From IMG/VR virus record IMGVR_UViG_3300025930_000007, positions 1 through 64,000 of that record: DNA of 64,000 bases; one strand, 5' to 3'. The notes beneath the pieces are model-generated. The model was given only the letters and a program-made list of their open reading frames with translations. It had not been told where the DNA came from and ran no database searches. The position numbers were made by a program, and so were the translations under genes. This document shows, piece after piece, positions 18,567-61,281 of the stretch. Numbering within the stretch: the stretch's first letter is position 1; each line of letters begins with the position of its first letter.

Positions 18567-20918
18567 ATGAGCGACCTCGACAAGGACATGCAGGGCGGCC
18601 GACTCCGTCGAGTCGGAAAGCCCGAGGACCCGGATGACGCAGTTCGACTTCGCGATATCGCAGGAATCGCGAAGATCGAAGCGCAGAAATGCATTCCTGC
18701 GGCATTCCCGACTGGAATGGGCGGTGGCCGCGGCGATCGCGGAGAGCGCGGGCCACAGGGCCCTGCAGGATCTGGCAGCGGCGGCGGGGGATTCCAGGGA
18801 AATCAGGGCAATCAAGGAAACCAGGGCCCGAGTGGTGCGTTTGGTGGGCCGCAGGGAAATCAAGGATTCCAGGGACAGACAGGACCTCAGGGAAACCAAG
18901 GCAATCTTGGAGCTCAGGGATCCCAAGGATTTCAAGGCTTGCAGGGAAGCGGTGTCCAGGGAAATCAGGGACTTCAGGGCACTTTGGGCCTACAAGGGCC
19001 GCAGGGCTTCCAAGGGACCGGGGCCCAGGGAAATCAGGGTCTACAGGGCTTTCAGGGCCTACAAGGGCCACAGGGCTTTCAGGGAAGCGGATTCCAGGGT
19101 GCTCAAGGTCTGCAGGGACTTCAGGGTATCGATGGAACTCAAGGGTTCCAGGGCTTCCAAGGAACCGGGGCTCAAGGAAATCAGGGCCTGCAGGGCTTTC
19201 AGGGGTTCCAGGGATTCCAGGGATTCCAGGGAACTGCGAACGGCGGAGCTCAAGGGTTCCAGGGATTCCAGGGACCTCAGGGTCTACAAGGTCTCCAGGG
19301 CCTTCAGGGAAATCAGGGCTGGCAGGGTCTACAAGGTCTCCAGGGCCCTCAAGGATTCCAAGGGGCCGACGGGCCGCAAGGTCCTCAGGGCCCCCAAGGA
19401 TTCCAGGGACTTCAAGGAGCTCAGGGAAACCAGGGCTGGCAAGGTCTGCAAGGCCTTCAGGGTCCTCAAGGATTCCAAGGGAACGATGGCCCTCAGGGAA
19501 ACCAGGGGCTGCAGGGACTTCAAGGTCTTCAGGGACCTCAAGGCTTCCAAGGCCTAACCGGGCCTCAGGGAAACCAGGGGCTACAAGGACTTCAGGGGCC
19601 CCAGGGATTCCAAGGACTCACTGGGCCTCAAGGCAATCAAGGTCTCCAAGGCCTTCAGGGTCTGCAAGGGCCTCAAGGGCTGCAGGGACCTCAGGGCTTC
19701 CAAGGATTCCAGGGACCATCCAGTGGATTCTCTGCGGGAGTCTCGACCGGCGGCAATACAGCCGGCAGCACGGGAACAGTTTCCGCGCAGGTCGTGTTTG
19801 CCGGCGGCAATAACATCACGCTCTCGCAGTCAACCCTCGCTGGCGGCCTTGCGACAATCACGATCTCGGGTCGCGATGCTGTTTTTGGTCTCGGCGTATC
19901 GACTGGCGGAAACACTTCGGGCAATACGGGAACGACGAATGGCACCGTTGTTCTAGAGGGAATCGGAGCTGTAACTCTCTCTCAGTCTACTGATGCCGGA
20001 AGTCAAGCGACCATCAGGATTTCCGTAGCGAATGGCATTTTCGGTGCCGGCGTCTCTACGGGCGGCAATACTTCCGGAACGACTGGAACCGTCACAGGCA
20101 CGCTGGTCTTGGCCGGTGGAAACAATATTACTCTCTCGCAATCGACTGATACCGGCGGCGCGACGATCACGATCTCTGGCGCCAATGGCTTCGGCGCCGG
20201 CGTCTCGACGGGCGGCAACACTTCCGGGACGACAGGAACAAATGGCGGGACGCTGGTGCTTGTTGGGGGCAATGGAGTTACGCTCTCTCAAGCAACCGGC
20301 ACCGGCGGTAACACTATCACGATCTCCGGCGATGCTACCAACCTTCGGATCTTGTCCCACAATGCCGAATGGGTCTCCAACTGGACGGTGTTGAACCAGA
20401 CGCTCAGCCTAGTCCGGATCACGGTGCCACGCCTTGTCGTCGGGACGCGCATGGAATTCGTGATCGATCTGACGGGCAACTCGAACTCATCCGGCGCGTT
20501 CACGATCTCGGCCGGCTTCTATACGATGTCGGGATCGACTGCATCTCTCGCTACGAGCGGTTCCAGGCAAATCTCCTGGAGCTCCGGCAGCGCCACCAGC
20601 GTCTCAACCATCTATGGCGGCAATTCCGGAACGAGATTCCGGACATTGGCTATCAATGCCACTCTGACTCCGGGCGATTACCTTGTCGGCCTGAACTTCC
20701 AGACTTCCAATAACGGGACATGGAGGATATTCGGACGGCAGGGAATGTCGATCGTCGGGGCTCTGGACACCAATGAAACAAATATCTTCCTGGATGGAAC
20801 GTCAGTGTCTTCGACAGGCGCGTTCCCGGTCTCCATCAACGTCACGGACACGAACTACGCGCGCACGGGAGGAAGTGCCCTCAGGCAGCCAGGGTTCATC
20901 GTGGCAGGCACGTTGTAA
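18567..20918 (+). CDS. Long collagen fibre with GVSTGGNT(S/A)G repeats
   Basis: About 310 aa of G-X-Q, four roughly 52-aa repeats, C-terminal head. Confidence 0.85.
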
Positions 20919-26469: not shown

Positions 26470-29400
26470 TTGCCGATTGCGGGGATCAAGCTTCTCATCA
26501 TCGGGCCCGCCATCCAGCTTCCGTACGAGTGCAAGGTCATCAGCGACAGCGCAGCGATTCTTCCGACGATTGCACAGTTCCAGCCGGACGTCATCATGAC
26601 GACGGCCTTCATACCGGGATCGCTTAACAGCGCTACCTTCGAACTTAGGAAGCGCTGGATCCATGTACCGGCAAACACGTCGCCGGAGGCCGCAAGGCAG
26701 GCCGTGGAGAACTGCTATCTGTCCAACATCTGGGCTGTTCATCAATACCAGGCCGCCAACCCTCTGATCTCCGTCTATACCGGCACCTATAACACCGGCG
26801 ATTACCTGAGAGATACCTACCAGTCGCTTCGAGACCAGACCTATGCGAACTGGGAGTGGGTCGTTATCGACGATCATTCAAACGATGGGACCTGGGAACG
26901 TCTTGAGGCCTTGGCGAAAGACGACATCCGGGTTCGTCCATATCGTTCAGGAAAACGGCTCGAAAAGATTGGGGCAGTGAAGGACCAGGCCACCCGTCTT
27001 TCGAAGGGCGTTTATCTCGTGGAACTCGACCACGACGACATGCTGACGGATTTCGCTCTCGCTGATATTAGGGATGCCTTCGAAAAGAATCCGGAAGTAG
27101 GCTTCGTCTATTCAAACTCGAGCAACTTCTTCGAGAACGGCCAATTCCATCGGTTCGACGACGAATTCTGGAAGAATCGCTACCGGGAGACCGAGTACCG
27201 CGGGAAGAAATGGCTGGAATGCCTGAATCCGGACATCTACGACCGCTTCGGACCTGACTTCCAACAGCAGTTCGGATGGTTTCTGACGGTCGGTCCCAAT
27301 CACGTCCGGGCCTTCCGGGCGAAGACCCTGTTTGAACTCGGCGGTTATAATCCGAGTCTTCCGGTCGCCGATGACTGGGACCTCTATGCGAGATTCTTCC
27401 TTTATTCGAAGTGCCATCACGTCGACAAGATGCTGTATCTCTACCGTTTCAAGGACAACTGGGCGAACACGACCTTCACAAGGAACAAGGCGATCCAGGA
27501 TCACCTGCAACTCGGCCGTGGTAACTACGCGGCGGCGTTCAAGGCCTTCAACGAGCAGCGCCAGAGATCGGCGTCGACCGGAGGTGGCGAGCTCCTGCTG
27601 ACGGTCATCGTTCCCTCCATCCCATCGCGGATGGAATCCTTGTATGGGGTGCTGAACGATCTCTTTAAGCAGGCGGATGGGAAGCCGGTCGAAATCGTCT
27701 GCCTGCTCGACAACAGGAAGAGCAACCTCAGCGAGAAGCGAAACCAGGCGATCAAGAATGCCAAGGGCAGGTTCATCTCGTTCGTCGATGATGACGACAA
27801 GATCGAGCCGGATTACGTCGATCAGATCCTCGAAGCCATCAAGACCAATCCTAAGGCCGACTGCGTTGTCTTTGACGTTCTGGTTCACGGCTACACGCCG
27901 GAGCCCAAGCTCTGCGCTTACGGGATCGAGTACGAACAGGGGGAAAACGAGACCTCCTATCTCCGGAAGCCGAATCACGTCATGGCCTATCGGACGGAGA
28001 TCTCTCGGAAGCACGAGTACCGGAAGGATCTCTCCGCGATCAGCGAAGACACCGAATGGGCTGAAAGGGCCTCGAAAGACATTCAGTCCCAGGCCAGGAT
28101 TTCGAAGACCCTTTATCACTACTTCTACAACCCGAAGACCACGACGCAGCTCATGCCGGCTCCAGGCCAGAGAACGCTGAAGGATGTCTCGTTCATCGTG
28201 CTCGAGGCCGCCGAGACTGCGCTCACAAAACGCTGCATCCAATCCATCCGGGAGCATGCACCTGGCTCGGAAGTCGTCTACGTCTCAAACGGCGTCATTT
28301 CCTGTCCGGATCGGAAGGCAGACGTCCAGGTCGACTTCAACGTCAATCTGGGGTTTGCGGCTGGATGTAACGCCGGCGCGGCCGCGGCCACGCGCCCAAT
28401 CCTATGCTTCATGAACAATGATGCGGCTTTCGTGGACGATACTCCGGCGAAGCTGCTCGCGGGCCTGTCGGATGCGAATCCGATCACCGCGCCATTCTCC
28501 AATAAGGCAAAACCCCCTCAGGGTGATATTCCCAGGGCAGCCGTCCCTAAGACCGACGTCTTTCCGGATATGGTAGTCGGGCTCTGCATGATGATCCCAA
28601 AGGCGCTCTTCCAGGAGCTCGACGGCTTTGATCCCGATCTTCTCACCTACGAAGACGACGAATTCTGCCGGAAGGCGGCGATCAAGGGCTTCAAGCCCAA
28701 GGTCGTGGCCAATACCTGGGTCGACCATGAACGTCATGAAACCTTCAAAAAGCTGGGCCTCGATGTCGACAAGGTGATGGCCAAGAATGCCCTCATCTAC
28801 CGGAAGAAGAACCCTGTCATCCGCGTGATCGTGATTGCAAAAGACGAGGAAAAGGCGCTGCCCGGCTTCTTCAAGCAGTTCGAGCAGATCACGCGCGACT
28901 GGTGCGTCCTGGACACAGGTTCGAAAGATCGCACGGAGATCCTGGCGAAGGATCTCGGATGTCGCGTGGAGAAAGGGCCTTTCGAGGACTTTGCCTCCGC
29001 GCGGAACGATGCGGTCAGCCGCTTCGGCGCCGGCGCCGACTGGATCATCATGATCGATCCGGATGAAAGGCTGGATGAACATACGCTCAAGCATCTCAAG
29101 GAGCTGCTCTATCGCACGACGGACGACATCCTTTATTCGATGCTCCAGGCGAAATATCCGGATGGGAGCATACGCCGTTTCGTTTCAAAGCCCTTCATCT
29201 GGCGTAACAAGCCGGAAATCAAGTGGGTGTTCAAGGTCCATGAGAAGCTCATTGGATCCAAGCACCAGGCCGTGGTCGTGAACTCCATGAATACGCACCT
29301 GATCGAGCTCCACGAAGATGGACGTCGGCAGGCCGCGAGCGGCTTCTACGACGCGCTCATGAAGGCGGAGCCCTATTTCACGGATCCGGCTTACAAGAGG

Positions 29401-30105
29401 AAGATGATCGAGGAATGGCCGATCCTCGATTACGACCGCATGGAAGATCCTCGCATCCGGGCGATCTATGCTGGACCCCTAGTCTCCGTCGTCATTCCGA
29501 CCTACAAGCGGGCCGAGCTGCTTAATCGAGCCATTTCATCGGCGCTTGCCCAGGATTACGCCAATATCGAAGTGATCGTCGTCGGTGATAAGTGCCCTGA
29601 TCTTGCGGAACTGATACCGCTCGGTCCTCCGCCAGATCGCGTCCGGCTGTTCAATCTGGTCCACAATCATGGCGCCGGCGGTGCCGTTCCGCGCAATCAT
29701 GCGATCGCCGCGGCCGGCGGTTCGCTCATCGCCTACTTGGATGACGACAATGTCTGGAAGTCGGATCACGTCTCATCGCTCTATACGGCGATGATGGAAA
29801 ATGGAGCCTCGTTCGCCTTTTCATCCATGGAAGTGAACGGTACCGACCTCAAATTCTCGGAACCGAAACACGGTAGCATCGACACGTCATGCATCCTCCA
29901 TCGGAAGAACCTCGTGGAGAAGTACGGAGGCTGGAAGGACCGGACGAAGGCAAATTACTATCACGATTGGGAGTTCGTGAGTCGCTGGGTGAATGGTAGC
30001 GAGAGGTGGGTGGCTACCAGGAAGCCGACGCTGATCTATAACGCGGAGACCTGCGGACAGCGTGAATTCCTCGAGGCGCTTGCCTTGTCGAAGGCATCCA
30101 AGTAG
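26470..30105 (+). CDS. Multi-domain glycosyltransferase with five GT2-type modules
   Basis: Five strand-1 plus DxD-type sets: LISVYTGTYN/LDHDD, LTVIVPSIP/FVDDDD, VSFIVL/MNNDA, VIVIAKDEE/IDPDE, VSVVIPTYKR/LDDDN. Confidence 0.85.
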   Translation: MPIAGIKLLIIGPAIQLPYECKVISDSAAILPTIAQFQPDVIMTTAFIPGSLNSATFELRKRWIHVPANTSPEAARQAVENCYLSNIWAVHQYQAANPLISVYTGTYNTGDYLRDTYQSLRDQTYANWEWVVIDDHSNDGTWERLEALAKDDIRVRPYRSGKRLEKIGAVKDQATRLSKGVYLVELDHDDMLTDFALADIRDAFEKNPEVGFVYSNSSNFFENGQFHRFDDEFWKNRYRETEYRGKKWLECLNPDIYDRFGPDFQQQFGWFLTVGPNHVRAFRAKTLFELGGYNPSLPVADDWDLYARFFLYSKCHHVDKMLYLYRFKDNWANTTFTRNKAIQDHLQLGRGNYAAAFKAFNEQRQRSASTGGGELLLTVIVPSIPSRMESLYGVLNDLFKQADGKPVEIVCLLDNRKSNLSEKRNQAIKNAKGRFISFVDDDDKIEPDYVDQILEAIKTNPKADCVVFDVLVHGYTPEPKLCAYGIEYEQGENETSYLRKPNHVMAYRTEISRKHEYRKDLSAISEDTEWAERASKDIQSQARISKTLYHYFYNPKTTTQLMPAPGQRTLKDVSFIVLEAAETALTKRCIQSIREHAPGSEVVYVSNGVISCPDRKADVQVDFNVNLGFAAGCNAGAAAATRPILCFMNNDAAFVDDTPAKLLAGLSDANPITAPFSNKAKPPQGDIPRAAVPKTDVFPDMVVGLCMMIPKALFQELDGFDPDLLTYEDDEFCRKAAIKGFKPKVVANTWVDHERHETFKKLGLDVDKVMAKNALIYRKKNPVIRVIVIAKDEEKALPGFFKQFEQITRDWCVLDTGSKDRTEILAKDLGCRVEKGPFEDFASARNDAVSRFGAGADWIIMIDPDERLDEHTLKHLKELLYRTTDDILYSMLQAKYPDGSIRRFVSKPFIWRNKPEIKWVFKVHEKLIGSKHQAVVVNSMNTHLIELHEDGRRQAASGFYDALMKAEPYFTDPAYKRKMIEEWPILDYDRMEDPRIRAIYAGPLVSVVIPTYKRAELLNRAISSALAQDYANIEVIVVGDKCPDLAELIPLGPPPDRVRLFNLVHNHGAGGAVPRNHAIAAAGGSLIAYLDDDNVWKSDHVSSLYTAMMENGASFAFSSMEVNGTDLKFSEPKHGSIDTSCILHRKNLVEKYGGWKDRTKANYYHDWEFVSRWVNGSERWVATRKPTLIYNAETCGQREFLEALALSKASK

Positions 30106-31289: not shown

Positions 31290-31727
31290 ATGGACAAGAA
31301 GAAGAGGGTCCTGGTTGTCGAGGACGACAATGGAATCCGATTGGCCATCTCCAGCATCTTGGAGCGCCAGGGATACGAAGTGACCAACGTCACCGACGGC
31401 GAGAAGGCAATGGAACAGGTGGACAAGGCCGACGTCGTCCTGCTGGATATCTTTCTGCCCAAGATCACGGGGGACGAGTTCCTGAGACGGATCCGAAACA
31501 AAGGGAATATGGTGCCCGTCGTCCTCATGAGCGCCGCAATGCCGGAGGCTGAAGCAATGGAATGCTTCAAGCCATTCAAAGTGGTCGATTACGTGGCAAA
31601 GCCGTTCCGAACCAAGGAACTGGTCGAGAAGGTCAACAAAGCGGCTTCAATCGCGGACAATCTTTCCGTGGTCAAGAACACGGCGGATCGACTGAAGGGC
31701 TTCATCAGCCGGCAGGCGGCTCTCTGA
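31290..31727 (+). CDS. Single-domain response regulator (CheY-like receiver)
   Basis: 'VLVVEDD', 'LLDIFLPKITG', 'LMSA', 'KPF'. Confidence 0.9.
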   Translation: MDKKKRVLVVEDDNGIRLAISSILERQGYEVTNVTDGEKAMEQVDKADVVLLDIFLPKITGDEFLRRIRNKGNMVPVVLMSAAMPEAEAMECFKPFKVVDYVAKPFRTKELVEKVNKAASIADNLSVVKNTADRLKGFISRQAAL

Positions 31728-38253: not shown

Positions 38254-38555
38254 TGGGACCAAGTCGTATTCCTATCGTTCATAATCGGGCTTTCGGCCAC
38301 GTCGCGCTGTTTCCGATGGCGCCGACGATCGCCGGCCGGGGCAATCGGCTGGGCGAACCGCCAGGCCCGACGATCGATGGGAGCACGATCGACTATCAGA
38401 AGACGAAGGACTATTACGAGGGCATTCGCAACAATTACGGCGCGCTGGTTTCGCTGATCGGTGAAGATTCAGCGAAAGCGGCGCTGGATGAAGCGAAACA
38501 GTCTTATGAGGAGGCTCTTCAGGCTTGGACGGCGTCCCAGCCGACGAGGATCTGA
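38250..38555 (+). CDS. LGE-leader small helical protein
   Basis: ATGA overlap; 'GRGNRLGE'. Confidence 0.65.
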   Translation: MMGPSRIPIVHNRAFGHVALFPMAPTIAGRGNRLGEPPGPTIDGSTIDYQKTKDYYEGIRNNYGALVSLIGEDSAKAALDEAKQSYEEALQAWTASQPTRI

Positions 38556-38557
38556 CC

Positions 38558-38899
38558 ATGAGATGGCGCCTGTGTCAGTGCGAGATCAATGGACTCGTTC
38601 GTCCTACGAATGGACCTCTCCGGATCAAATGGACGGACATCAAGGACAAGGATGTCCTCAGGGCTCGGCTATCCGGCCCGCAAGGCGGGACTGCGCACAC
38701 GGTCCGGATCCAGGGCAAGTATTTCTACGTCGGGCCCGACAAGGAGTTTCGGGAGGTCCCGGCGGATACTCTGACCGATGCTCTTCATGCGGGAGTATTC
38801 ATGCGCAATGAAGAGATCAAGGCCAAAAAGAAACTGCCTCACAAGAAGCGGCCGATGCCGCACGTATCCCTCAGCAAACCGAAAAAGAAGAAGGCTTAG
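38558..38899 (+). CDS. Basic hypothetical protein
   Basis: GAGGA SD; Lys-rich tail. Confidence 0.6.
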   Translation: MRWRLCQCEINGLVRPTNGPLRIKWTDIKDKDVLRARLSGPQGGTAHTVRIQGKYFYVGPDKEFREVPADTLTDALHAGVFMRNEEIKAKKKLPHKKRPMPHVSLSKPKKKKA

Positions 38900-38907
38900 G
38901 AGGATCT

Positions 38908-39258
38908 ATGATGACCGTGGTTCCTATTTCGAAGGCGGCCCCGGGCTGGAGCCCGTCGCCTTTCCAGGCGCCTGTGCTGAAGCCCGCCGCGCGGCCGATG
39001 CTGGCTCAGGCGGTCGTGGCCACGCCGTCGACGCCTCCAGGCACGGTCATCGTGAATCCACCGACGACGCCTCCACCTTTCGTGGATAGCGCGTTTGTGA
39101 ACGCGATCGTCGCGGGCCTGGGGACGGTGGCCTGGTACACCATGACGAGGGCGTTCTACAGCGCCGAACGCTACAAGACGGCGATCTTCACGGGCACTCT
39201 GACCGGGCTTCTCGGCATCAAGACTCTGTTTGATATCTGGGATCTGCGTGTGCGATAG
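38908..39258 (+). CDS. Two-TM membrane protein with basic Pro-rich leader (MLAQ variant)
   Basis: AGGAGG SD; two TM segments. Confidence 0.7.
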   Translation: MMTVVPISKAAPGWSPSPFQAPVLKPAARPMLAQAVVATPSTPPGTVIVNPPTTPPPFVDSAFVNAIVAGLGTVAWYTMTRAFYSAERYKTAIFTGTLTGLLGIKTLFDIWDLRVR

Positions 39259-39269
39259 AGGATGAAGCG

Positions 39270-39542
39270 ATGATTGCAAAGCCGAACAAGATGTCCTGGG
39301 CGCCGGCGCCAATGAAGCGCATGCCGATCCCTGCATCCAGACCGAATCTGGGGCAGCAGCCGCCGAAGACGGCCTTGTCGTCCAAGGAAGTCGCGATTGC
39401 GACCGACATGGCGGTGCTGACCGGCTCGGCGCTGATGGTCTGGGCGAACAAGAAGGCCGGAAATGACTGGAGCACCTTCTGGTGGATCGTCAGCGGCGTC
39501 ACGGCAATGAAGATGCTGCACGACTTCTCCAGGCCCTACTAA
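39270..39542 (+). CDS. LGQ-leader two-TM protein
   Basis: 'SRPNLGQ'. Confidence 0.7.
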   Translation: MIAKPNKMSWAPAPMKRMPIPASRPNLGQQPPKTALSSKEVAIATDMAVLTGSALMVWANKKAGNDWSTFWWIVSGVTAMKMLHDFSRPY

Positions 39543-39555
39543 CAGGGGGATCACG

Positions 39556-39822
39556 ATGAAGATCAAGCTCTCGGATCTTCCGGTAGGGAACTGTTTCACC
39601 GGAAAGAACGGTGAAATGAAGAAGAAGATCGGCGATCGGAAGGTCGCGACCGTCGGAGAGATGAGCGGTCGCGTCCGGACCCGCAAGGTGAAGGGTAATC
39701 CCGAAGTCGAGCCTTCGCCGTGTTCGCTCCGGCTGTTCGGAGTCGGATTGCGTCGGCATCCCGACCTGATGGTGGAGATCGGCGACGGTAACCCCCTGAA
39801 GAACAAGAAGAACAGCAAATAG
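39556..39822 (+). CDS. Small basic protein
   Basis: K/R-rich; SD present. Confidence 0.65.
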   Translation: MKIKLSDLPVGNCFTGKNGEMKKKIGDRKVATVGEMSGRVRTRKVKGNPEVEPSPCSLRLFGVGLRRHPDLMVEIGDGNPLKNKKNSK

Positions 39823-39836
39823 ACGAGGGGAAATTT

Positions 39837-40241
39837 ATGAAACTGAAGATTCAGATGGGTGCCCGCGAACTGGTCGAGCTCGGCCGCGGCTGCGGCCCCG
39901 GGCAGATCATGCGCCACGGCTTCACCCGAAAAGACGGCGTATACGTTCCTCCCGGCTGCGTGAAAGATCAAGGCGCTAGGGGCCGGACGCCGGCGTCCAA
40001 GAGGATCCTCCCTCAGCCGAAGGCCGGCATGCTGAAGGGCTGGGAAGCCAAGAAGAGCGCAGAGCAGCGTCATGCCTCTCTCCGCAAGGCCGTCAAGGCG
40101 GAAGGCTGCCGCAACGTCATCAATCGGCTCAGCCTCGAGCGTGGCTTCACGAAGACAACATCTCCCAAGACTGCGGCGACTGCCAAGAAAGATTGGCAGT
40201 GGCTTCGTAAGCAGGGCTTCTGCAAGCTCAAGACCAAATAG
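39837..40241 (+). CDS. Basic protein resembling a conserved giant-virus (NCLDV) hypothetical family
   Basis: 'CGPGQIMRHGFTRKDGV..CVKDQG..RHASLRKAVK..RL..KKDWQWL' pattern recalled from NCLDV proteins; unverified. Confidence 0.65.
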   Translation: MKLKIQMGARELVELGRGCGPGQIMRHGFTRKDGVYVPPGCVKDQGARGRTPASKRILPQPKAGMLKGWEAKKSAEQRHASLRKAVKAEGCRNVINRLSLERGFTKTTSPKTAATAKKDWQWLRKQGFCKLKTK

Positions 40242-40253: not shown

Positions 40254-41417
40254 ATGTTGAAGGCGCGTCCTCTCATCCAGAACTCCCTGTTTCCGCTGCG
40301 GCGTGGGCCGTCCTTGGGAGCCGAGATGCTGATCGAGCTCGGCCAAACGGTCGCGTCTCCCAGTGTGCCTCCGCCTACCGCCCCCAGGGTTTCTACTCCT
40401 ACGACGCCTGCAACTAAGACTCCGCAACTGGTTCAGATCTCGGCGGATGAAGGAAACCTCGTCATCAAGACCGTCGAGAACATCGTCAACTTCTCCCAGG
40501 ATTTCCCTATCGAGTTCACTTCCTACTGTCCCACCGACCGCTGGCAGGAGACGCTGACCCAGGTCGGCACCTGGAGCCATGAGGTCGAGCGTCAGATCAA
40601 GGCGGGGGCCCAGACGGTATCGGTTCCGGCGGAGGCGATCTTCCGTCTGGTGGATCTCGAGAAATGCGCCACCGCGGCACGGGAGTCTCGCTTGACGGCG
40701 GCAAAATGGGCCTTCAGCCTGTCCGCCGGCGGGACGATAGCCAACGTCCTCTTCGGGCTGTCATGGATCACGGTACCGACGTACATCGCGGGCCTTGCAA
40801 TTCTCTTCGGAGGCCCGTTGATTGCGAGAATGAGGGCTCAGCCGGAAGATCCCTACAAGCCGTCGATCGGTTGCACGAAATCTCATCAGCTCTCGGGTTG
40901 CGCGGCGCCATACGAGAGCGAAGAAGAGCAAAAGATGATCAAGCTGGTGGAGCGCGTCATTCTGGTCGAACGGCCAGGCCGACGCGAACACTGGTGGGGA
41001 TCGGTCGACTGCAATCCGGGTGGCGCCCAGGCGTCGACGTGTCTCAAGAAGGGACGCCTTCGCGTTCGTATCGAAGGCTGGGAGGGCGACACGGTGAATC
41101 CGGCTCCGGGATGGGAGTTCTCCACGGACTGCGAGGAAGGCTCTCTCAACGTGATCGCCGTCATGGAGACTGGATCCGAAATCCGCGAGACTGGTTTCGG
41201 AGCGGTTCCGGAGAAATCCAGGCACAAGGAAACCTACTGGGTCGAATATATCGGACCGAAGACCGGCGGCATTATCCGTCGCGCCGGTCCCTTCGGCTGT
41301 CCAATGGATACCCGCGATCATGCCATCGATGACGGCGGGATCACGAAGAAGGGCCAGGACGGCGATTACGTGCTTCTCAACATGGAAGGCGAGGAAGTGC
41401 CGGTGCCCAAATCATGA
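40254..41417 (+). CDS. LGA/LGQ-leader membrane protein, family B, with Cys-containing C-terminal domain
   Basis: 'PSLGAEMLIELGQ'; two TM segments. Confidence 0.75.
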   Translation: MLKARPLIQNSLFPLRRGPSLGAEMLIELGQTVASPSVPPPTAPRVSTPTTPATKTPQLVQISADEGNLVIKTVENIVNFSQDFPIEFTSYCPTDRWQETLTQVGTWSHEVERQIKAGAQTVSVPAEAIFRLVDLEKCATAARESRLTAAKWAFSLSAGGTIANVLFGLSWITVPTYIAGLAILFGGPLIARMRAQPEDPYKPSIGCTKSHQLSGCAAPYESEEEQKMIKLVERVILVERPGRREHWWGSVDCNPGGAQASTCLKKGRLRVRIEGWEGDTVNPAPGWEFSTDCEEGSLNVIAVMETGSEIRETGFGAVPEKSRHKETYWVEYIGPKTGGIIRRAGPFGCPMDTRDHAIDDGGITKKGQDGDYVLLNMEGEEVPVPKS

Positions 41418-41917
41418 CGACGTTCGCGAAAGGTCTTGCAAGCGGAACGATTCAGGCTCCGCCGAAGACATCCTGGTGGCCGCGTCATACGCGGACCATG
41501 ATGAGGTACCTGGCGTTGTCCGGGGCAAAGACACCGAATGCGAAGATCGAGATTCAGGGTAATATGCAGAAGGGCGCCCAGGAATGGGAGGCCATGATTC
41601 CAAAGGTCGCCAAGCAAGGGCTGATGATCGAACATGCCGCTCTCGAGATCGCACTGGTTGATGCCGTGCGCCTGAATAAAGAGGCGGATATCGATGGTAT
41701 CGGCAGAAAGCTGCTGGACAATGCCGGTCAGCTTGCGGCGGTCCTGGGGATCGCGGTCAAGGAGTTTCCGGAAGAGCATTTCAGGCGGCTGTTCATGGAT
41801 CACGTAGGTTTGTATGCTGGTAGTGTTCGAAAGAAAATAGAAGGCGTGGTGGTGAACAGCGCCGAAATCGAGTCGAACATGCTGCAGCTTGCGGACTTTA
41901 CCGCAGAGTGGCTTTAG
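41414..41917 (+). CDS. Helical-bundle hypothetical protein
   Basis: ATGA overlap; spaced His residues in helices. Confidence 0.7.
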   Translation: MTTFAKGLASGTIQAPPKTSWWPRHTRTMMRYLALSGAKTPNAKIEIQGNMQKGAQEWEAMIPKVAKQGLMIEHAALEIALVDAVRLNKEADIDGIGRKLLDNAGQLAAVLGIAVKEFPEEHFRRLFMDHVGLYAGSVRKKIEGVVVNSAEIESNMLQLADFTAEWL

Positions 41918-48893: not shown

Positions 48894-49460
48894 ATGAATC
48901 TCGGAACTGTGCGCATGATGCCGATCTCGGGTAAGAGCGCCCGGCCTTCTCTGTTCGGCTTTTCGGCCGATCAGTCGAGGGGATTCTTCGGCTTAGGCGC
49001 GATTGAAACCCCCTCCGATTGGTATCAAAGGGCCAAAGAAGGACTGGCAAAATACGATGATCTCTTCGCTCGTGTAGGCCGGATCGCCGATCAGACGGAA
49101 CGCCAGAACATACAGAATTGGCTCGGATCTCCGATCGTCGACGGCACTCCTGCAAACGCCGCTCAGCAGGTGTTGACGGATATCCGGGAAGACGTGGAGT
49201 CGTTCATTCCTGCGAACGTCAATGCCTATCAGGTATCGAGCAGAACGGAGAAGATCCAGAAGCTCGAATCGATCAATCATGATTTCGAGGCGATGGTGGC
49301 CAACGCATCGGCCAAGGCGGGTGTCTTGCCGGTGACCCACGGCATCGTCCCTCCTCCTCAGCCTGATCCCGGTCCGTCATGGCTCCTTCCGGTCGTGGTC
49401 GTCGCCGGAGCCCTGGGGATCGCGACGCTAGTGACCTACGTCTACGGAGGGAAGGCTTAG
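48894..49460 (+). CDS. LGA-leader membrane protein, family A
   Basis: 'WYQRAKEGLAKYDDLFAR..ESFIPANVNAY'. Confidence 0.8.
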   Translation: MNLGTVRMMPISGKSARPSLFGFSADQSRGFFGLGAIETPSDWYQRAKEGLAKYDDLFARVGRIADQTERQNIQNWLGSPIVDGTPANAAQQVLTDIREDVESFIPANVNAYQVSSRTEKIQKLESINHDFEAMVANASAKAGVLPVTHGIVPPPQPDPGPSWLLPVVVVAGALGIATLVTYVYGGKA

Positions 49461-50027
49461 ATGAATCTCTCCGGAGCTCCGATCGGAAGAAACGCCAACA
49501 TGGGCGGCTCCATGTTCCATAGGTCCGGTTTTGCGCCGGTCATATCCTCTCCCGTGCAGAAGCGCCGGCTGGGAGAGGACGAGCAGAAGTGGTTCACCCG
49601 GGCCAAGGCTGCAGTAGCGGCTTATGACGATCTCTGGACTCGCACGCTGCTGATCAACGACAAGACCTATCGCGAACAGCTTGCGGCGAAGTACCACCCG
49701 AAGCCCGAAGATCAGAATGGGGCATTGTATCGCCGCAATTCGGTTGCGTACAAAGTCTCCGAAGCGGAAAGCTTTACGCCGGTCAATTATAAGATCTTCG
49801 AAGACACCCAGCAGCAGGATAAAGTCACCAAGCTGGAAGAGCTGAACTCCGACTTCCGCAAGGACGTCGAGTACGGTGAGAAGACCTACGGTCTTCTTCA
49901 GGCGCCGGCGATTATTGAACAGACGACGACAACTGCTCCGCCGACGGAGGTTCCTGGTTGGCTGATTCCAGCCGGGATCGGTCTTGGAGCTTTGATTATC
50001 GGTGCTCTGCTGTTCGGCGGAGACTAG
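49461..50027 (+). CDS. LGE-leader membrane protein, family A
   Basis: 'WFTRAKAAVAAYDDLWTR..ESFTPVNY..TYGLL'. Confidence 0.8.
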   Translation: MNLSGAPIGRNANMGGSMFHRSGFAPVISSPVQKRRLGEDEQKWFTRAKAAVAAYDDLWTRTLLINDKTYREQLAAKYHPKPEDQNGALYRRNSVAYKVSEAESFTPVNYKIFEDTQQQDKVTKLEELNSDFRKDVEYGEKTYGLLQAPAIIEQTTTTAPPTEVPGWLIPAGIGLGALIIGALLFGGD

Positions 50028-50036: not shown

Positions 50037-50621
50037 ATGATCCCATTGCGGATGGCTTCGATCGGTGGTTTCAACGGTCCCCGCGGAACGATGTTCCACG
50101 GCAGCGCGACTGATTCTTTCAGCGTGGGTCGGATCTCCCTGGGCGAATCCGATCTGGGCGTGAACACGACCGGACTGGCTCGCTATGAGCTGGCGAAGAA
50201 GGAACTCGCTCAGTACGACAGTCTGGTCGAGCGGGTCAAGCGTATCGGCAACAAGGCTGCCCGCGAGCAGATCATCGATACCTACGGCCTGAGCGAGCCG
50301 GACAACAAGGACAAGTCGCTCTACGCGCGTAACGTGGTCGCGTCCGACCTCGCGAACGCGGAGAGCTACACGCCCATCAACTATGACATCTACACGGCTC
50401 CTGGACCCGCCAAGAACCGTCCTGGCAGGCTCCAGGATTGGAACTCGAGTTTCGCAAAAGACGTCAAGTACGCGGAAGACACGTACGGCATCCTGCCGGA
50501 ACCCCAGGTGATCGAGCGGACGACCACCGTCAGCCAGGTTCCGGCCTGGGTGATGCCGGTCACGATCGGTGCGCTCGCGGTGGCTGGTCTGGCTGCCTTG
50601 GGAGTCTTCAGCAAAAAGTAA
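50037..50621 (+). CDS. LGE-leader membrane protein, family A
   Basis: 'YELAKKELAQYDSLVER..ESYTPINY..TYGIL'. Confidence 0.8.
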   Translation: MIPLRMASIGGFNGPRGTMFHGSATDSFSVGRISLGESDLGVNTTGLARYELAKKELAQYDSLVERVKRIGNKAAREQIIDTYGLSEPDNKDKSLYARNVVASDLANAESYTPINYDIYTAPGPAKNRPGRLQDWNSSFAKDVKYAEDTYGILPEPQVIERTTTVSQVPAWVMPVTIGALAVAGLAALGVFSKK

Positions 50622-51413: not shown

Positions 51414-51932
51414 ATGCGCTTCGACCTCGTCGCCTTCCTGGGAGGCCTGACTGTTGGAGCCGCGGCTGCGGCTCTATACGGTGCCACACGGAGCACGAAG
51501 CTCGGCTGGAGTGGCGGCGGTGCAGGCGGTGGTCCTGGCGGCGGCGGTAGCTTCGGAGGCAGTCCCAGCGGCTCGGGGGGCTCATCCTATGCCCCCGGTG
51601 GTACAGGAGTCTATTCTGGACCGCCTGGACCCTTCGGTGGAGGGTTCATGGGACCTAGCGTCCTGGAATCGACGCCTTCTGAGGGAGAAGGAGAGATCGG
51701 GCCGATCGTTTCCGTTCCTCCGATCATTCATGACGGAGATGGTAACGGAATATTCGGAGGCTCATTCTTTGGGGTCAACGTGGCCCCTTGGTTCTGGCCT
51801 CTGAACATCGTGCCCCGGAACGACGAGATCATCTGCAAGAAGATTCCAGGCGATCCTGAAGAGACGATGGTATGTAAACGCAGATATCCGGTTCGAGCGG
51901 TGGCTTGGGGGCCACCCGCCGGCTGGCTCTAG
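51414..51932 (+). CDS. N-terminal TM, Gly-rich protein
   Basis: N-terminal hydrophobic helix, 'TKLGW', Gly-rich linker. Confidence 0.7.
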   Translation: MRFDLVAFLGGLTVGAAAAALYGATRSTKLGWSGGGAGGGPGGGGSFGGSPSGSGGSSYAPGGTGVYSGPPGPFGGGFMGPSVLESTPSEGEGEIGPIVSVPPIIHDGDGNGIFGGSFFGVNVAPWFWPLNIVPRNDEIICKKIPGDPEETMVCKRRYPVRAVAWGPPAGWL

Positions 51933-56588: not shown

Positions 56589-56948
56589 GGGGCCGAAATA
56601 GTATCGACGGAGATCCAAGACAGGAAAGCTGCGTGTCGTGGACGCCGGTTGGCCACGTAAAACATCCGGTAAAAACCTAACTGGCAAGAGCCAGCTCGCT
56701 CGCGCGGCCTAGCCGTGTCGTCGCCCCTAGTGACGCCGATAGCCTGGGTGCGACGTTAATAATCGGTCGCTACCCGTAAGGTGATTCCTACCTTCCGGGG
56801 ATAAGAATAAGTGGAACGTGAAGCCCGCAAACCTGCTGGTGAGCGAGCGGAGCTTCGAGAGCCGCAAGGCAGAATCATCAGATACACACGTAGATGCCCC
56901 TAGACTGTGATCTTCGGACGGGGGTTGCAAAGCCCCCCGGCTCCACCA
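56589..56948 (+). ncRNA. ssrA: tmRNA with tag peptide (A)GKSQLARAA
   Basis: 5' GGGGCCGAAA..TCGAC and 3' CGGCTCCACCA with G3:U70; TAACT-GGC resume context, tag at 56683-56712. Confidence 0.9.
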
Positions 56949-56949: not shown

Positions 56950-57023
56950 GCGGTCAAGATGTTACAGTAGCATGCCAGTTTTCCAAACTGGACGCGCGGG
57001 TGCGACTCCCGCTGACCGCACCA
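56950..57023 (+). tRNA. tRNA-Gly(TCC)
   Basis: Cloverleaf; CCAGT-TTTCCAA-ACTGG; CCA end. Confidence 0.9.
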
Positions 57024-57138
57024 ATATTTTTAGAAATAGAATGAGCGGCGCTTTTCGCCTACAATAAGAGGGTACGACCGGGGCTCTCCTCCAGAGGTTG
57101 GCGGAGATCGACATCTTGAAGAATGTCTTGGGGGCCCT

Positions 57139-57396
57139 GTGGTGGAGTTTCCGGAAGACAAGACACTTCAACCCGGATCCTGGTACCTCTGGCGCACCGG
57201 GAAGCAACGCATCTTCATTGCCTGCCCGCTCTGCAGCCAGGTCGTCTCGATCGATCCGGAGGAGATCGAGATTCTGGAGGACGGCAGATTGTCCAAGATC
57301 ATCGACTGTCCCAACATGATCTGCGATTTCACTGATGCAATACGGCTGCAGGGCTGGGGTGAACAGGGATCATCTTCCAGTCTTCCGAAAGTTTAG
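57139..57396 (+). CDS. Small Cys-rich hypothetical protein
   Basis: 'IACPLC..CPNMIC..IRLQGW'; start uncertain. Confidence 0.5.
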   Translation: MVEFPEDKTLQPGSWYLWRTGKQRIFIACPLCSQVVSIDPEEIEILEDGRLSKIIDCPNMICDFTDAIRLQGWGEQGSSSSLPKV

Positions 57397-57398
57397 AT

Positions 57399-57472
57399 CG
57401 GGGCGTGTTGTAGCGGCAGCAAGCGACGTTCCCAACGTTGAGGTGTGGGTTCGACTCCCATCGCCCCGTCCA
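57399..57472 (+). tRNA. tRNA-Gly(CCC)
   Basis: CGACG-TTCCCAA-CGTTG; GTTCGA; CCA. Confidence 0.9.
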
Positions 57473-57480
57473 ATTTTGCT

Positions 57481-57600
57481 GTGAATCAAGACCGTGGGTC
57501 ACCCAAGGGACGCTGCAAGGTGACATCTGGCCCGGCAGCCGTGGAGTCCTCCCGGCCGGGGAATAACTGAGGACCTAGGCGTCCCACTATCTTGATTCAC
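57481..57600 (+). ncRNA. Unidentified end-closed structured RNA
   Basis: GTGAATCAAGA..TCTTGATTCAC terminal stem between tRNAs. Confidence 0.5.
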
Positions 57601-57602
57601 AT

Positions 57603-57673
57603 AGGCCACGATCCAGCGATCAGCTTGGTCTCCAAAACCGAGCAGTGGGGGGCGGCACCCCGGTGGCCTGCCA
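57603..57673 (+). tRNA. tRNA-Trp(CCA), atypical D and T arms
   Basis: AGGCCAC/GTGGCCT acceptor; CTCCAAA loop; CCA. Confidence 0.7.
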
Positions 57674-57681
57674 GAATTCAT

Positions 57682-57755
57682 GGTCCCTGAGTATGTCGGC
57701 AGTACGCTACCTTGTCACGGTAGAAGGACGGGTTCGACTCCCGTAGGGATCGCCA
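57682..57755 (+). tRNA. tRNA-Asp(GTC)
   Basis: CTACC-TTGTCAC-GGTAG. Confidence 0.9.
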
Positions 57756-57763
57756 AAAGAAAA

Positions 57764-57840
57764 CCCCCGGAGGCCGAAGTCGTGGAGGCGCCGGCTTGTC
57801 ACGCCGGAGAAAGCGGGTGCGACTCCCGTCCGGGGGGCCA
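57764..57840 (+). tRNA. tRNA-Asp(GTC), second copy
   Basis: CCGGC-TTGTCAC-GCCGG. Confidence 0.85.
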
Positions 57841-57856
57841 ACCTTAGTCTCGATAC

Positions 57857-57931
57857 TCCCAGATCGTCTAACTGGTAGGACGACAGACTCTGAATCTGTA
57901 AATTGGGGTTCGAATCCCTATCTGGGAACCA
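57857..57931 (+). tRNA. tRNA-Gln(CTG)
   Basis: ACAGA-CTCTGAA-TCTGT. Confidence 0.9.
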
Positions 57932-57934
57932 GTC

Positions 57935-58249
57935 TTATGCGCCGAGATGCTTGGCGATCAGGGCCTCGAGCTGTTCCCTGGTCATCTCGCCTTCAGTCCG
58001 ATGGACCTCCTGGCCCTCCTTGAAGAAGACGAGTGCCGGCAGGCCGTCGATGTCGTAGCCGTTGGCCGACTTCTTGCACTGGTCGATCCGGGCGCCCACG
58101 ATCAGGACGGAATCGTTGTAATCGTTGGCAGCCTGCTCGATCACGGGCTTGAAGTCGACGCAATGGGTGCATTCGGGGTGCCAGAAGTCGACGATCGCGA
58201 GCGGCGCCCCCAGGACTTCGCTGAAGTTCTTGTCCGTCACGGAAAGCAT
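57935..58249 (-). CDS. Thioredoxin family protein
   Basis: 'IVDFWHPECTHC', 'IDGLPALVFFKEG..R..G'; AGGAG SD. Confidence 0.85.
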   Translation of the reverse strand: MLSVTDKNFSEVLGAPLAIVDFWHPECTHCVDFKPVIEQAANDYNDSVLIVGARIDQCKKSANGYDIDGLPALVFFKEGQEVHRTEGEMTREQLEALIAKHLGA

Positions 58250-58281
58250 TCGAATTCTCCTAATCTCCAAGCATTATACAA

Positions 58282-58356
58282 GCCGGTCTAGCTCAGCAGT
58301 AGAGCGCCCGTCTGAAAAGCGGGAGGTGGCGGGTGCGACACCCGCGGCCGGCACCA
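58282..58356 (+). tRNA. tRNA-Phe(GAA)
   Basis: CCCGT-CTGAAAA-GCGGG. Confidence 0.9.
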
Positions 58357-58363
58357 AATATTT

Positions 58364-58438
58364 GGGGGCATCGTCCAATTGGTAGGACACCAGCATGGCA
58401 TGCTGGGGATCGGGGTTCAAGTCCCCGTGCTTCCACCA
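58364..58438 (+). tRNA. tRNA-Ala(GGC)
   Basis: CCAGC-ATGGCAT-GCTGG; G3:U70. Confidence 0.9.
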
Positions 58439-58446
58439 GAAAACTT

Positions 58447-58522
58447 GCGCAGGAGAGGCACGGTGACCTCACCAGTCTCATAAGCTGGGGATAGCGGGTT
58501 CGACTCCCGCCTGTCGCTACCA
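58447..58522 (+). tRNA. tRNA with CAT anticodon (Met or Ile2), bulged acceptor stem
   Basis: CCAGT-CTCATAA-GCTGG; GTTCGA; CCA. Confidence 0.7.
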
Positions 58523-58538
58523 AGATTCCCTTATACGA

Positions 58539-58615
58539 CGCGGGGTGGAGTAGCCCGGTAACTCGCCAGGCTCATAACCTGGAAACCGCAGGTTCAAATC
58601 CTGCCCCCGCAACCA
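58539..58615 (+). tRNA. Initiator tRNA-fMet(CAT)
   Basis: CGCGGGG..CCCCGCAACCA with C1:A72 mismatch. Confidence 0.9.
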
Positions 58616-58622
58616 AAAATTC

Positions 58623-58748
58623 GGAGGCTGACTGACGAGGGTACTTCGCTGGTTCAATTCCAGCCTGCCCGACTAGGGCGCTCGGATCCCGAGCTCCCCA
58701 GCGGGCAGGCGCCCGATGCCTGGGCACCCCTTGTCTCCAATCGCCTCC
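58623..58748 (+). ncRNA. Y-RNA (YrlA)-like RNA 1
   Basis: GGAGGC/GCCTCC closing stem, GAGGGTACTTC, then T arm, acceptor-like stem and D-like arm. Confidence 0.6.
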
Positions 58749-58757
58749 AAAATCTTC

Positions 58758-58887
58758 AGGGGCTGCAGAGCGAGCTTACTTCACCAGACTCTTAATCTGG
58801 AGGACCTGGTTCGAGTCCAGGCTTCGGCCGAAAGGTCGATGTGGTGTATCGGTAGCACACTCAGTGGCTTGTTCGACAATTGCCCCT
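58758..58887 (+). ncRNA. Y-RNA-like RNA 2 containing a circularly permuted tRNA-Lys(CTT)-like module
   Basis: AGGGGC/GCCCCT stem, TTACTTC, anticodon arm, T arm, GAAA-capped acceptor stem, D arm. Confidence 0.65.
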
Positions 58888-58897
58888 ATAAAAATTC

Positions 58898-59082
58898 GCG
58901 GGCTGATGGATCGAGGTTACTTCGCCCTACAAAACCCCCGAAAAGGAAGGTCCGTCGAACCTTCCTCTACCGCGAAAGCGAACGGGTTGAGCGTGAGGTG
59001 CTTGTGGTAACACGCCGGCGCAAGCCGGAGAAGGAGGTTCGACTCCTCCCAAATCGACATGGCCTTGGCCGTAATTGCCCGC
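58898..59082 (+). ncRNA. Y-RNA-like RNA 3
   Basis: GCGGGC/GCCCGC stem, GAGGTTACTTC, D arm + GCAA-capped stem + T arm. Confidence 0.6.
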
Positions 59083-59091
59083 ATAATATTC

Positions 59092-59182
59092 GAGCGCTGA
59101 CTAGCGGCGTTACTTCGGAGCCTGGGCTCGAAGCCCGACACGGCGAAAGCCGTGGGCAAGTCGCTGCTTAATGATTGCGCTC
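59092..59182 (+). ncRNA. Y-RNA-like RNA 4 (short)
   Basis: GAGCGC/GCGCTC stem, GCGTTACTTC, two small hairpins. Confidence 0.55.
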
Positions 59183-59186
59183 ACAA

Positions 59187-59261
59187 GGGGCCATAGCTCA
59201 GCAGGGAGAGCGCCGGTTTCGCATACCGGAGACGCGAGTTCGATTCTCGCTGGTTCCACCA
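59187..59261 (+). tRNA. tRNA-Ala(CGC)
   Basis: CCGGT-TTCGCAT-ACCGG; G3:U70. Confidence 0.9.
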
Positions 59262-59282
59262 AAATTTAGCATCATCAGACCT

Positions 59283-59358
59283 GGGCCGGCATGTACCGTA
59301 GTGGCGACACTGCCTTGCAAGCAGCGTGTGGTGGGTGCGACTCCCATCCGGTCCACCA
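59283..59358 (+). tRNA. tRNA-Ala(TGC)
   Basis: CTGC-CTTGCAA-GCAG; G3:U70. Confidence 0.8.
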
Positions 59359-59365
59359 AATATTC

Positions 59366-59492
59366 GAGAGCTGCAGATTGAGGTTACTTCTCTACCACTT
59401 ACGAGACGTGGTGTAGCGGTCTGCACACCGGCCAAAAGCCGGAGGTGGTCGTCCGACTCGACCCGTTGTTGCCTTGATCATCAATTGCTCTC
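59366..59492 (+). ncRNA. Y-RNA-like RNA 5
   Basis: GAGAGC/GCTCTC stem, GAGGTTACTTC, D arm + anticodon-less stem + T-like arm. Confidence 0.6.
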
Positions 59493-59496
59493 AAAT

Positions 59497-59583
59497 GGGG
59501 TCGCTTGGAGAGAAGGATCTCCACCTGTCTGTAAAACAGGCGTCCGTTTGGACTAAGCGGCGCGATACCGCACGGCCCCACCA
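59497..59583 (+). tRNA. tRNA-Tyr(GTA)
   Basis: CCTGT-CTGTAAA-ACAGG; long variable arm. Confidence 0.8.
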
Positions 59584-59584
59584 C

Positions 59585-59660
59585 TGCCTCGTCTGTCTAA
59601 TTGGTAGGACGCCGGTCTTTGAAGCCGGAGATCTCGGTTCGAATCCGAGCGAGGCAACCA
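59585..59660 (+). tRNA. tRNA-Gln(TTG)
   Basis: CCGGT-CTTTGAA-GCCGG. Confidence 0.9.
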
Positions 59661-59673
59661 AAGCTCTCTAGAT

Positions 59674-59749
59674 GCGGCCGTGGTGTAGCTTGGTAGCACG
59701 AGAACTTGCCATGTTCTAAGCACGGGTTCAAATCCCGTCGGCCGCTCCA
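59674..59749 (+). tRNA. tRNA-Gly(GCC)
   Basis: AGAAC-TTGCCAT-GTTCT. Confidence 0.9.
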
Positions 59750-59760
59750 ATATTTCCCAT

Positions 59761-59834
59761 CGGCTCGTAGTTCAACAGCAGAACGTTCGCTTGATAAGCG
59801 AAAAACGCAGGTGCGACTCCTGCCGGGCCGACCA
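59761..59834 (+). tRNA. tRNA-Ile(GAT)
   Basis: TTCGC-TTGATAA-GCGAA. Confidence 0.85.
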
Positions 59835-59837
59835 TAC

Positions 59838-59913
59838 GGTGGCCGTGGTGTAATGGTTTGCACATCTGGTTGTGGCCCAGAGGGTGCGGGTTCGATCCCC
59901 GTCGGTCACCCCA
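59838..59913 (+). tRNA. tRNA-His(GTG)
   Basis: G-1, TCTGG-TTGTGGC-CCAGA, C73. Confidence 0.9.
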
Positions 59914-59936
59914 AAAAATAATGCTACAATGGCTGG

Positions 59937-60134
59937 GTGCCATATGTAGAACCGTCCTGGCGACAATGGCCTCAGTGGAGATGGCTCTCCCGGACTCTTT
60001 GCTTCTTCGGAAACCATCACTGGATGAGGAGCAAAAGCCTCCAGAATCTTCCGATCGCCTGCGCGGTCTGCTCGAAGAAGACGAAGCATTTCAATACGTA
60101 CATCAAGCTCGCCAAGAAACACGCCGGGCTGTAG
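59937..60134 (+). CDS. Small Cys/His hypothetical protein
   Basis: 'LCFFGNHHW..CAVC'; its stop overlaps the tRNA-Pro 5' end. Confidence 0.5.
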   Translation: MPYVEPSWRQWPQWRWLSRTLCFFGNHHWMRSKSLQNLPIACAVCSKKTKHFNTYIKLAKKHAGL

Positions 60135-60200
60135 GGTAGCGGCCAACCCGCCTGCTTCGGGAGCAGGAAATCGCGAGTTCGAATCTCGCCAGCCCGACCA
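60125..60200 (+). tRNA. tRNA-Pro(CGG)
   Basis: CCTGC-TTCGGGA-GCAGG. Confidence 0.9.
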
Positions 60201-60203
60201 TTC

Positions 60204-60280
60204 CAGGGACATGGGGAGATAGCGCCCCACCTGTTTCGGATACAGGCATAGGCCCGGTGCGAGTCCGGGGTCCCTGACCA
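60204..60280 (+). tRNA. tRNA-Pro(CGG), divergent
   Basis: CCTGT-TTCGGAT-ACAGG (A37). Confidence 0.75.
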
Positions 60281-60289
60281 AAAACTCAT

Positions 60290-60366: not shown

Positions 60367-60379
60367 ATCTTTTTAATCT

Positions 60380-60455: not shown

Positions 60456-60462
60456 AAATCAT

Positions 60463-60617: not shown

Positions 60618-60640
60618 ATCTTGTTTGCTATGATTTCGCC

Positions 60641-61269: not shown

Positions 61270-61281
61270 AATATTCATCAC

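Follow-up and report, generated by a model that had tools for sequence, protein, structure and literature searches.

The stretch of DNA analysed here (the window) comprises bases 1-64000 of the 266,490-bp contig IMGVR_UViG_3300025930_000007. On its plus strand, positions 39837-40241 hold an exact open reading frame that begins with ATG and, as read from the sequence, encodes 134 amino acids, and a Shine-Dalgarno (SD) site, GAGGGG (39825-39830, +), is found 6 nt before the start codon. Since the TAG stop of the upstream gene (39820-39822) lies close to this SD site, coupling between the two genes is tight. Promoter and terminator signals did not rise above background in the 36-46 kb region around the gene. 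Its GC content by codon position is 0.59/0.50/0.76, the same as in the adjacent genes, including the third-position value (GC3 0.76). The protein contains four cysteines and is strongly basic, as a sequence-only reading of this DNA had claimed, with a pI of 10.8 and 32 Lys and Arg residues compared to 9 Asp and Glu residues. The open reading frame is an expressed-looking gene and a true member of the DUF5771 family. In Pfam, PF19075 (DUF5771) was the sole match of the protein, at 40.3 bits versus a cutoff of 26.2 (E=3.8e-10), with model positions 7-67 of 69 aligned to residues 68-126. DUF5771 was the family that the sequence-only reading had tentatively named, with a Pfam profile search proposed as a check; this search returned the expected NCLDV-family profile above its gathering threshold, and the name was correct also by the structural matches described below and by distant members that sit among genes of eukaryotic viruses. 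The residue pattern given along with the name fared less well in its spacing, as several gap lengths were wrong (six residues separate G34 from C41, where four had been given); with the spacing relaxed, all the named conserved residues occur in order across residues 19-122, and the pattern is near-exact in the consensus of 113 family members.

An exhaustive search returned 461 clusters at 50% identity with E<=1e-3, a minority of which have a known genomic context, and the matches span residues 17-126, indicating that conservation extends beyond the Pfam model. DUF5771 was found in 95 of 113 aligned relatives at E<=0.01 and in 99 of 113 at E<=10, most of the homologues retrieved carried precomputed PF19075 labels, and no other Pfam family recurred across the 113 members. 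All 181 members examined for charge have a pI above 9.5 (median 10.85), and ten long members inspected for domain fusions had only tandem DUF5771 copies and low-complexity basic tails. When the structure was searched against BFVD, ranks 1 to 19 were all Nucleocytoviricota proteins (E from 7e-8, 22-36% identity), from Marseillevirus, Harvfovirus, Iridovirus, Catovirus, Klosneuvirus, Tetraselmis virus, Edafosvirus, Hyperionvirus, Yasminevirus, Hokovirus, Chlorovirus and Bodo saltans virus, and no phage protein scored among the matches. The 134-aa protein had no match in PHROGs, no tblastn match at E<=1 in 50,697 phage records, and no relative in 185,579 prokaryotic reference genomes searched with clade-specific peptide patterns. 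Sequence and profile searches of the PDB gave no match and Foldseek against the PDB gave nothing at E<=1; a wide structural search of the PDB yielded generic helical matches with Z at most 6.6, below the noise level of the tool for helical folds, so that no similarity to solved nucleoid or histone-like DNA-binding folds was found by sequence, profile or fold. A 2,501-aa archaeal match (P0151) was set aside as non-homologous, its similarity being weak, repeated and to PKD beta-hairpins that lack the cysteines. DUF5771 is widespread in Nucleocytoviricota and was previously catalogued only from giant viruses of eukaryotes; one paper (PMC8715426) includes it when tabulating, in its supplement, the Pfam families found in NCLDV gene clusters, beyond which a full-text literature search for the name DUF5771 found no paper on it. 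The gene in the window lies outside that catalogued range, and its membership by sequence is unaffected.

An AlphaFold model built from the family alignment (pLDDT 82) and the alignment itself divide the protein into three parts. The N-terminal leader (residues 1-16; 39837-39884, +) has [L/M]-G at residues 7-8 followed by the helix ARELVELG; it is predicted to be disordered or weakly helical (residues 1-15 are modelled as disordered, pLDDT <50) and is absent from giant-virus members. It is followed by a two-cysteine beta-hairpin module (residues 19-50; 39891-39986, +) that lies outside the Pfam model and has the consensus C..G.I.R.GYTRK.G..V...C..D.G.PGKTP, with predicted strands at 23-26 and 40-43 between C19 and C41. 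The Pfam domain proper, supported by both the profile match and the model, is a three-helix bundle (residues 68-126; 40038-40214, +) with helices at 75-89, 91-104 and 110-125 at pLDDT >90. The family build is likewise a two-cysteine hairpin, a conserved linker (PGKTP...LP...G.L), which is less confident in the model, and the three-helix bundle. In the wide family alignment R78 is invariant and D119 nearly so; R26, G34, V37, G46, G49, G68 and D119 are at least 90% conserved in the 113-member consensus, and H79 and W122 are conserved inside the phage-type clade, whose median is four cysteines versus two in the other clan. For the hairpin we considered the 2-cysteine adaptor domain (2C_adapt) of giant viruses, presumably a similar short two-cysteine module in giant-virus proteins, and dropped this identity as none of the 113 members had even a weak match at E<=10. 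An AT-hook or SPKK-like reading of RGRTP/TSPKT was also dropped because the family consensus there is PGKTP.

Neighbouring genes and the N-terminal motif

The gene directly follows four small basic proteins (38525-39822), the last of which is the 88-aa upstream partner (39556-39822, +; pI 10.2, two cysteines). Downstream lie a 387-aa partner with eight cysteines and one transmembrane helix (40254-41417, +), for which a low-confidence model (pLDDT 53) gave no viral fold match, and a 167-aa gene (41414-41917, +) that comes after this partner in most phage-type loci. The order seen in the window (88-aa basic, DUF5771, 387-aa Cys-rich membrane, 167-aa) was found in 11 loci of 56-64% GC and is kept down to 38-47% identity of the DUF5771 protein. 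Some relatives have two nearby DUF5771 copies (L009 8001-8438 and 8452-8874; L008 9454-9837 and 10210-10551), indicating that the gene was duplicated within the phage lineage. Around the gene extends a block of 42 orphan proteins of late type (32428-55669, +) with no Pfam or PHROG matches. Between 30147 and 50621 (+), 24 of 37 proteins have a predicted transmembrane or hydrophobic segment, which in 11 or more of these lies at the very C-terminus in the manner of a tail anchor, and so many tail-anchored proteins are unusual for the late region of a tailed phage. We infer the late or virion character of the block solely from the fibre genes, the leaders and a weak scaffold-like match. Tandem paralogues with similar lengths and N-termini were observed as pairs at 14863-15681/15691-16518 and 53906-54715/54716-55669, and as a trio at 48894-49460, 49461-50027 and 50037-50621.

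The leader carries a motif that recurs through the block. [L/M]GQ was present at residues 9-60 in 16 of the 42 block proteins versus 0.9 expected, and the controls gave a maximum of 5 in 1,000 shuffles and 0/30 internal control windows; the wider form [L/M/I]G[Q/A/E] was present at the same residues in 25 of 42 versus 6.4 expected, with [L/M]-G-[Q/A/E] sitting 13-41 residues from the start in those 25. A short N-terminal motif shared across the protein set of one virus, as in the processed proteins of T4 and phiKZ, is thus found here. Within the DUF5771 family, 45 of the 48 phage-clan members that could be scored have [L/M]-G within the 7 residues ahead of their first core cysteine, compared to 1 of 104 members of the other clan, a short fragment on a long branch; in phage-type proteins the [L/M]-G of the leader stands 1-4 residues before the core. 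The N-terminus takes two forms, one in which a short, basic pre-sequence runs up to [L/M]-G and A-x-E-L-V-E-L-G-R follows, and the other with a direct start at M-[A/S]-E-x-L-I-E-[L/M]-G-R. The leaderless orthologues begin exactly after the first [L/M]-G, which is the pattern expected from removal of the pre-sequence, and one clade member (P0041) has a canonical LGQ. A 10-residue element, [L/M]GA..L[I/V]ELG, occurred twice in the six-frame translated window and not at all in 50 shuffles, the two sites being the DUF5771 protein and its 387-aa neighbour (SLG-AEMLIELGQ), in whose orthologues it was also found. Judged from these sequences, the block-wide [L/M]-G-[Q/A/E] probably serves as a common leader or cleavage signal. 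A search of the regions examined identified no protease for leader cleavage. A type IV pilin-like leader had been considered for G-A-x-x-L-I-E-L and was rejected because no hydrophobic helix follows.

The reading we favour, with a probability of roughly 55%, combines one old transfer of the gene with its recruitment into a late or virion module, in which the leader would act as a targeting or cleavage signal and the protein would be packaged as a polyanion-binding core protein. The leader would be read by the viral maturation system, and the mature basic core, with a net charge of about +20, would be packaged and bind the genome or another polyanion, so that the mature protein would have the role of a core protein or a condensing protein; its small domains may be stapled by the cysteine pairs. 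The packaged role is suggested by the charge, by the place of the gene after the four small basic proteins and by the shared leader, and it is the weakest link of the explanation; nucleic-acid binding is itself suggested by charge alone.

An intracellular role is the principal alternative, and we regard it as unlikely but deserving of weight. According to this alternative, the protein would be a nucleoid- or RNA-binding factor, or an adaptor that docks on the neighbouring membrane protein, and the shared N-terminal element would be an interaction helix and not a cleaved leader. Such extreme basicity suits any nucleic-acid binder, the gene directly adjoins a PIF1 helicase in two unrelated giant-virus contexts, ELVELG is predicted to be helical and is shared only with the adjacent gene, and structural hallmark genes are absent nearby. 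Set against this, the [L/M]-G before the core belongs to an N-terminal motif found block-wide in 16-25 proteins, a member of the clade has the canonical LGQ noted above, and fibre genes share the long co-directional block of the gene, which stands apart from the divergent replication genes.

Family tree and origin

The relationships within the family were examined in an unrooted tree of 184 members over 127 columns, obtained by a quick search in which the leader columns were not used. A branch at 95% SH-aLRT parts 58 rows from 126. The 58-row side holds the window protein, its close family and the phage-context relatives, and the three members with giant-virus contexts are all on the 126-row side. 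Among the 58, four deep rows are without phage-type features and are probably giant-virus members, which leaves a phage clan of 54 rows. When all 55 leader-bearing rows were held as one clade, the likelihood was better (p-AU 0.90). Members at about 31% identity sit among eukaryote-virus genes on both strands, including ATG8, ATG9, SNF2-RING, Ulp1, OTU, XRN, PIF1, patatin, P9_TM and zf-MYND, and the two such loci with readable DNA (L007 and L047) have 24-27% GC, with an SD site at 0-1 of 17-19 genes. The phage-type DUF5771 proteins are a lineage-specific subfamily, marked by fixed synteny, a composition matched to the genome, the added leader and two added cysteines.

On the favoured reading, one old gene crossing would have taken place between a giant virus and the ancestor of the phage lineage, and the direction from giant virus to phage would be the more likely one, since members are spread more widely on the giant-virus side and belong to a single lineage on the phage side. 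The reverse direction, with an origin of DUF5771 in huge phages or in the bacteria they infect and its uptake by an early giant virus, seems to us improbable. It draws on the tree being unrooted and on the depth of the phage-type clan, whose members reach about 35-45% identity and fill more than 50 clusters at 50% identity. The giant-virus side is nevertheless the larger, with 126 of 184 rows, and spans Imitervirales, Pimascovirales and Algavirales as compared to the one syntenic lineage on the phage side; no relative appeared in the 185,579 prokaryotic reference genomes under the clade-specific patterns or in the 50,697 phage records; and the leader and extra cysteines look like additions to a shared core. 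With the giant virus as donor, the locus would display the adaptation of a transferred gene, to which the recipient's own leader and extra cysteines were added. DUF5771 spans viruses of eukaryotes and of bacteria alike, and what is new here is a deep, single-origin, syntenic DUF5771 subfamily in soil viruses of roughly 350 kb with bacterial translation, which offers a tractable bacterial-virus setting for finding the role of the family.

Genome setting and virion type

The source soils are rhizosphere samples (3300025930 and 3300005544). The window has a GC content of 58.8%, and nearly all of its genes are tightly packed on the plus strand. SD cores precede 46% of crudely called starts versus 14% at random positions, and overlaps of a stop codon with an SD site, such as TAGGAGG, are frequent. 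A full-length tmRNA (56589-56948, +; Rfam RF00023, 116 bits versus a gathering score of 47), which ARAGORN missed, directly precedes a tRNA array with about 24 genes in the window (56950-62416, +) that continues to about 71.5 kb of the contig, with about 10 more tRNA genes just past the window (L010 14076-18571). ARAGORN also returned an odd call with a 4-base anticodon at 51634-51725. The contig at 64-74 kb encodes Ro60/TROVE, DnaJ, peptide deformylase and class II ribonucleotide reductase; the protein at contig 65.2-67 kb (L010 12275-13999) joins Ro60/TROVE to vWA, and its gene stands beside additional tRNA genes. Y-RNA families all stayed below the Rfam gathering score in the region that was searched. 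Other assemblies run upstream of base 1 through more plus-strand orphan genes to a replication module, beside which this orphan block starts about 10 kb upstream of the window; the module is transcribed divergently and encodes a bacterial-type SSB, two UvrD helicases and a ResIII helicase (L021/L023, 10-20 kb upstream). An 83-kb contig from the same sample (Ga0207701_10000079; L024) abuts the window start, which implies a genome of about 350 kb, and a 236-kb contig from another sample is compatible with this size, so that the genome is probably about 350 kb. The tmRNA, the peptide deformylase, the SD-coupled translation and the bacterial-type SSB point to a bacterial host, and the bacterial expression signals that had been noted from the sequence were upheld by the SD enrichment and the tmRNA in the window together with the deformylase and SSB just outside it. 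A stand-alone response-regulator receiver (31290-31727, +; Pfam E=1e-24) was also found, and a second receiver-type domain (cREC_REC) was observed at contig about 71.2 kb; through such receiver domains the virus may tap the two-component signalling of its host.

The remainder of the window is rich in fibre and glycan genes. Four collagen-repeat paralogues (1102-3165, 8111-10156, 12303-14645 and 16519-17709) have a near-identical N-terminal domain of about 45 residues, in which …RLPDGSIQ.SDGRI.YANS.IL.ADL.EI.PL..PPPAWPF was noted, and a fifth collagen protein (18567-20918) has a different N-terminus. A 563-aa protein at 10380-12071 reads like a beta-helix depolymerase, and a 1,211-aa protein (26470-30105, +) contains four to five GT2 domains. 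Farther along, at contig about 74-108 kb (L056, L057, L058), sugar-nucleotide epimerase and nucleotidyltransferase genes were observed together with those for a GT/FkbM-type methyltransferase, a CmcI-like methyltransferase and an acyl carrier protein, with unrelated genes between. A metallophosphoesterase (62983-63714, +) has relatives of 47-54% identity on other IMG/VR contigs, 100-365 kb long, and may be a second gene shared with giant-virus-like genomes; among the contigs bearing these relatives are AT-rich ones (26-33% GC) and the fragment GVMAG-M-3300027721-1.

Between 20 kb upstream of the window and contig position 139 kb (about 160 kb), no gene for a capsid, portal, terminase or tail protein could be recognised. 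This result comes from Pfam or PHROGs for the window with the 10 kb before it, from Pfam labels computed beforehand for the stretches out to 20 kb upstream and as far as contig 92 kb, and, at contig 92-139 kb, from tblastn and PDB searches confined to the largest ORFs. The genes found on this walk were for replication, nucleotide, sugar and glycan functions. Late genes that are nearly all orphans, a proteome-wide Gly-site leader motif and the many tail-anchored proteins set the lineage apart as an unusual megaphage. One could go further and propose that it is not a conventional tailed phage at all, but an internal-membrane giant virus of bacteria in which DUF5771 is a virion core protein held in common with Nucleocytoviricota, as the leader-bearing tail-anchored proteins, the glycosylated collagen-like fibrils and the basic core protein in a 67-kb late block might suggest; if true, DUF5771 would be shared through common descent or module exchange and not through an isolated transfer. 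We consider this a long shot. A wider link to membrane-containing large DNA viruses had been suggested in the sequence-only reading too, and such a link may exist: the block around the gene is unusually rich in tail-anchored membrane proteins with Gly-site leaders, but no capsid type was recognised in the roughly 160 kb covered.

Less probable still, and hardly to be entertained, is a contig that belongs to a GC-rich eukaryotic giant virus or a relative of one, so that no host-domain crossing occurred. Such a virus would account for the collagen-like fibres and many glycosyltransferases of the window, for the recurrence of sugar-nucleotide enzymes and sugar- and methyltransferases at contig 74-108 kb, for the relatives that the 62983-63714 phosphoesterase has on contigs of 330-365 kb that are AT-rich and on one fragment bearing a giant-virus MAG label, and for the failure to find tailed-phage hallmarks. 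It would not account for the SD enrichment with its stop/SD overlaps, the dense one-strand gene packing, the tmRNA, peptide deformylase, bacterial-type SSB and receiver domains, nor for about 160 kb in which no NCLDV core gene was found. That the match is spurious or the ORF not a gene can be dismissed almost entirely, as short length is all that speaks for it, against a Pfam score that exceeds the cutoff, 26 close homologues of 42-100% identity that keep the same length, conserved gene order, a codon-position GC typical of the genes of this genome and a confident model (pLDDT 82).

Comparison with known systems

The internal proteins of T4, with their capsid-targeting sequence, and the inner-body proteins of phiKZ carry short shared N-terminal sequences that the prohead protease removes. 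As in these internal head proteins, the protein studied here is small, and 16-25 proteins from a single block bear a common N-terminal motif; the L-V-E triplet in the DUF5771 protein also resembles the L/I-x-E site of T4 type. The resemblance does not extend to sequence or fold, the motif here is [L/M]-G-[Q/A/E] and not a Glu-site, no protease, capsid or portal was identified in this genome, and many of the leader-bearing proteins are tail-anchored. A second precedent is provided by the maturation proteases of adenovirus, poxvirus and asfarvirus, which act on Gly-site propeptides of core proteins. Here too a basic protein has an N-terminal piece that ends at Gly, and the motif extends over many proteins; in contrast to those systems, the motif consists of a hydrophobic residue, Gly and then Gln, Ala or Glu, the cleavage is putative, and the regions examined yielded no clan CE protease.

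The heavy investment in glycans is shared with mimiviruses and chloroviruses. The closest comparison is with the giant-virus members of PF19075 themselves, which have the same three-helix bundle with R78 and D119, a similarly high pI of about 10-11 and, in most of them, the same two-cysteine hairpin and PGKTP linker before the bundle. The virus described here differs from theirs in its use of bacterial signals for translation, in a fixed arrangement of genes that giant viruses were not seen to have and in a genome of 59% GC, compared to 24-27% in the two giant-virus loci with readable DNA, and its DUF5771 protein differs from theirs in the added leader ending in [L/M]-G and in the extra cysteine pair, C91 and C129.
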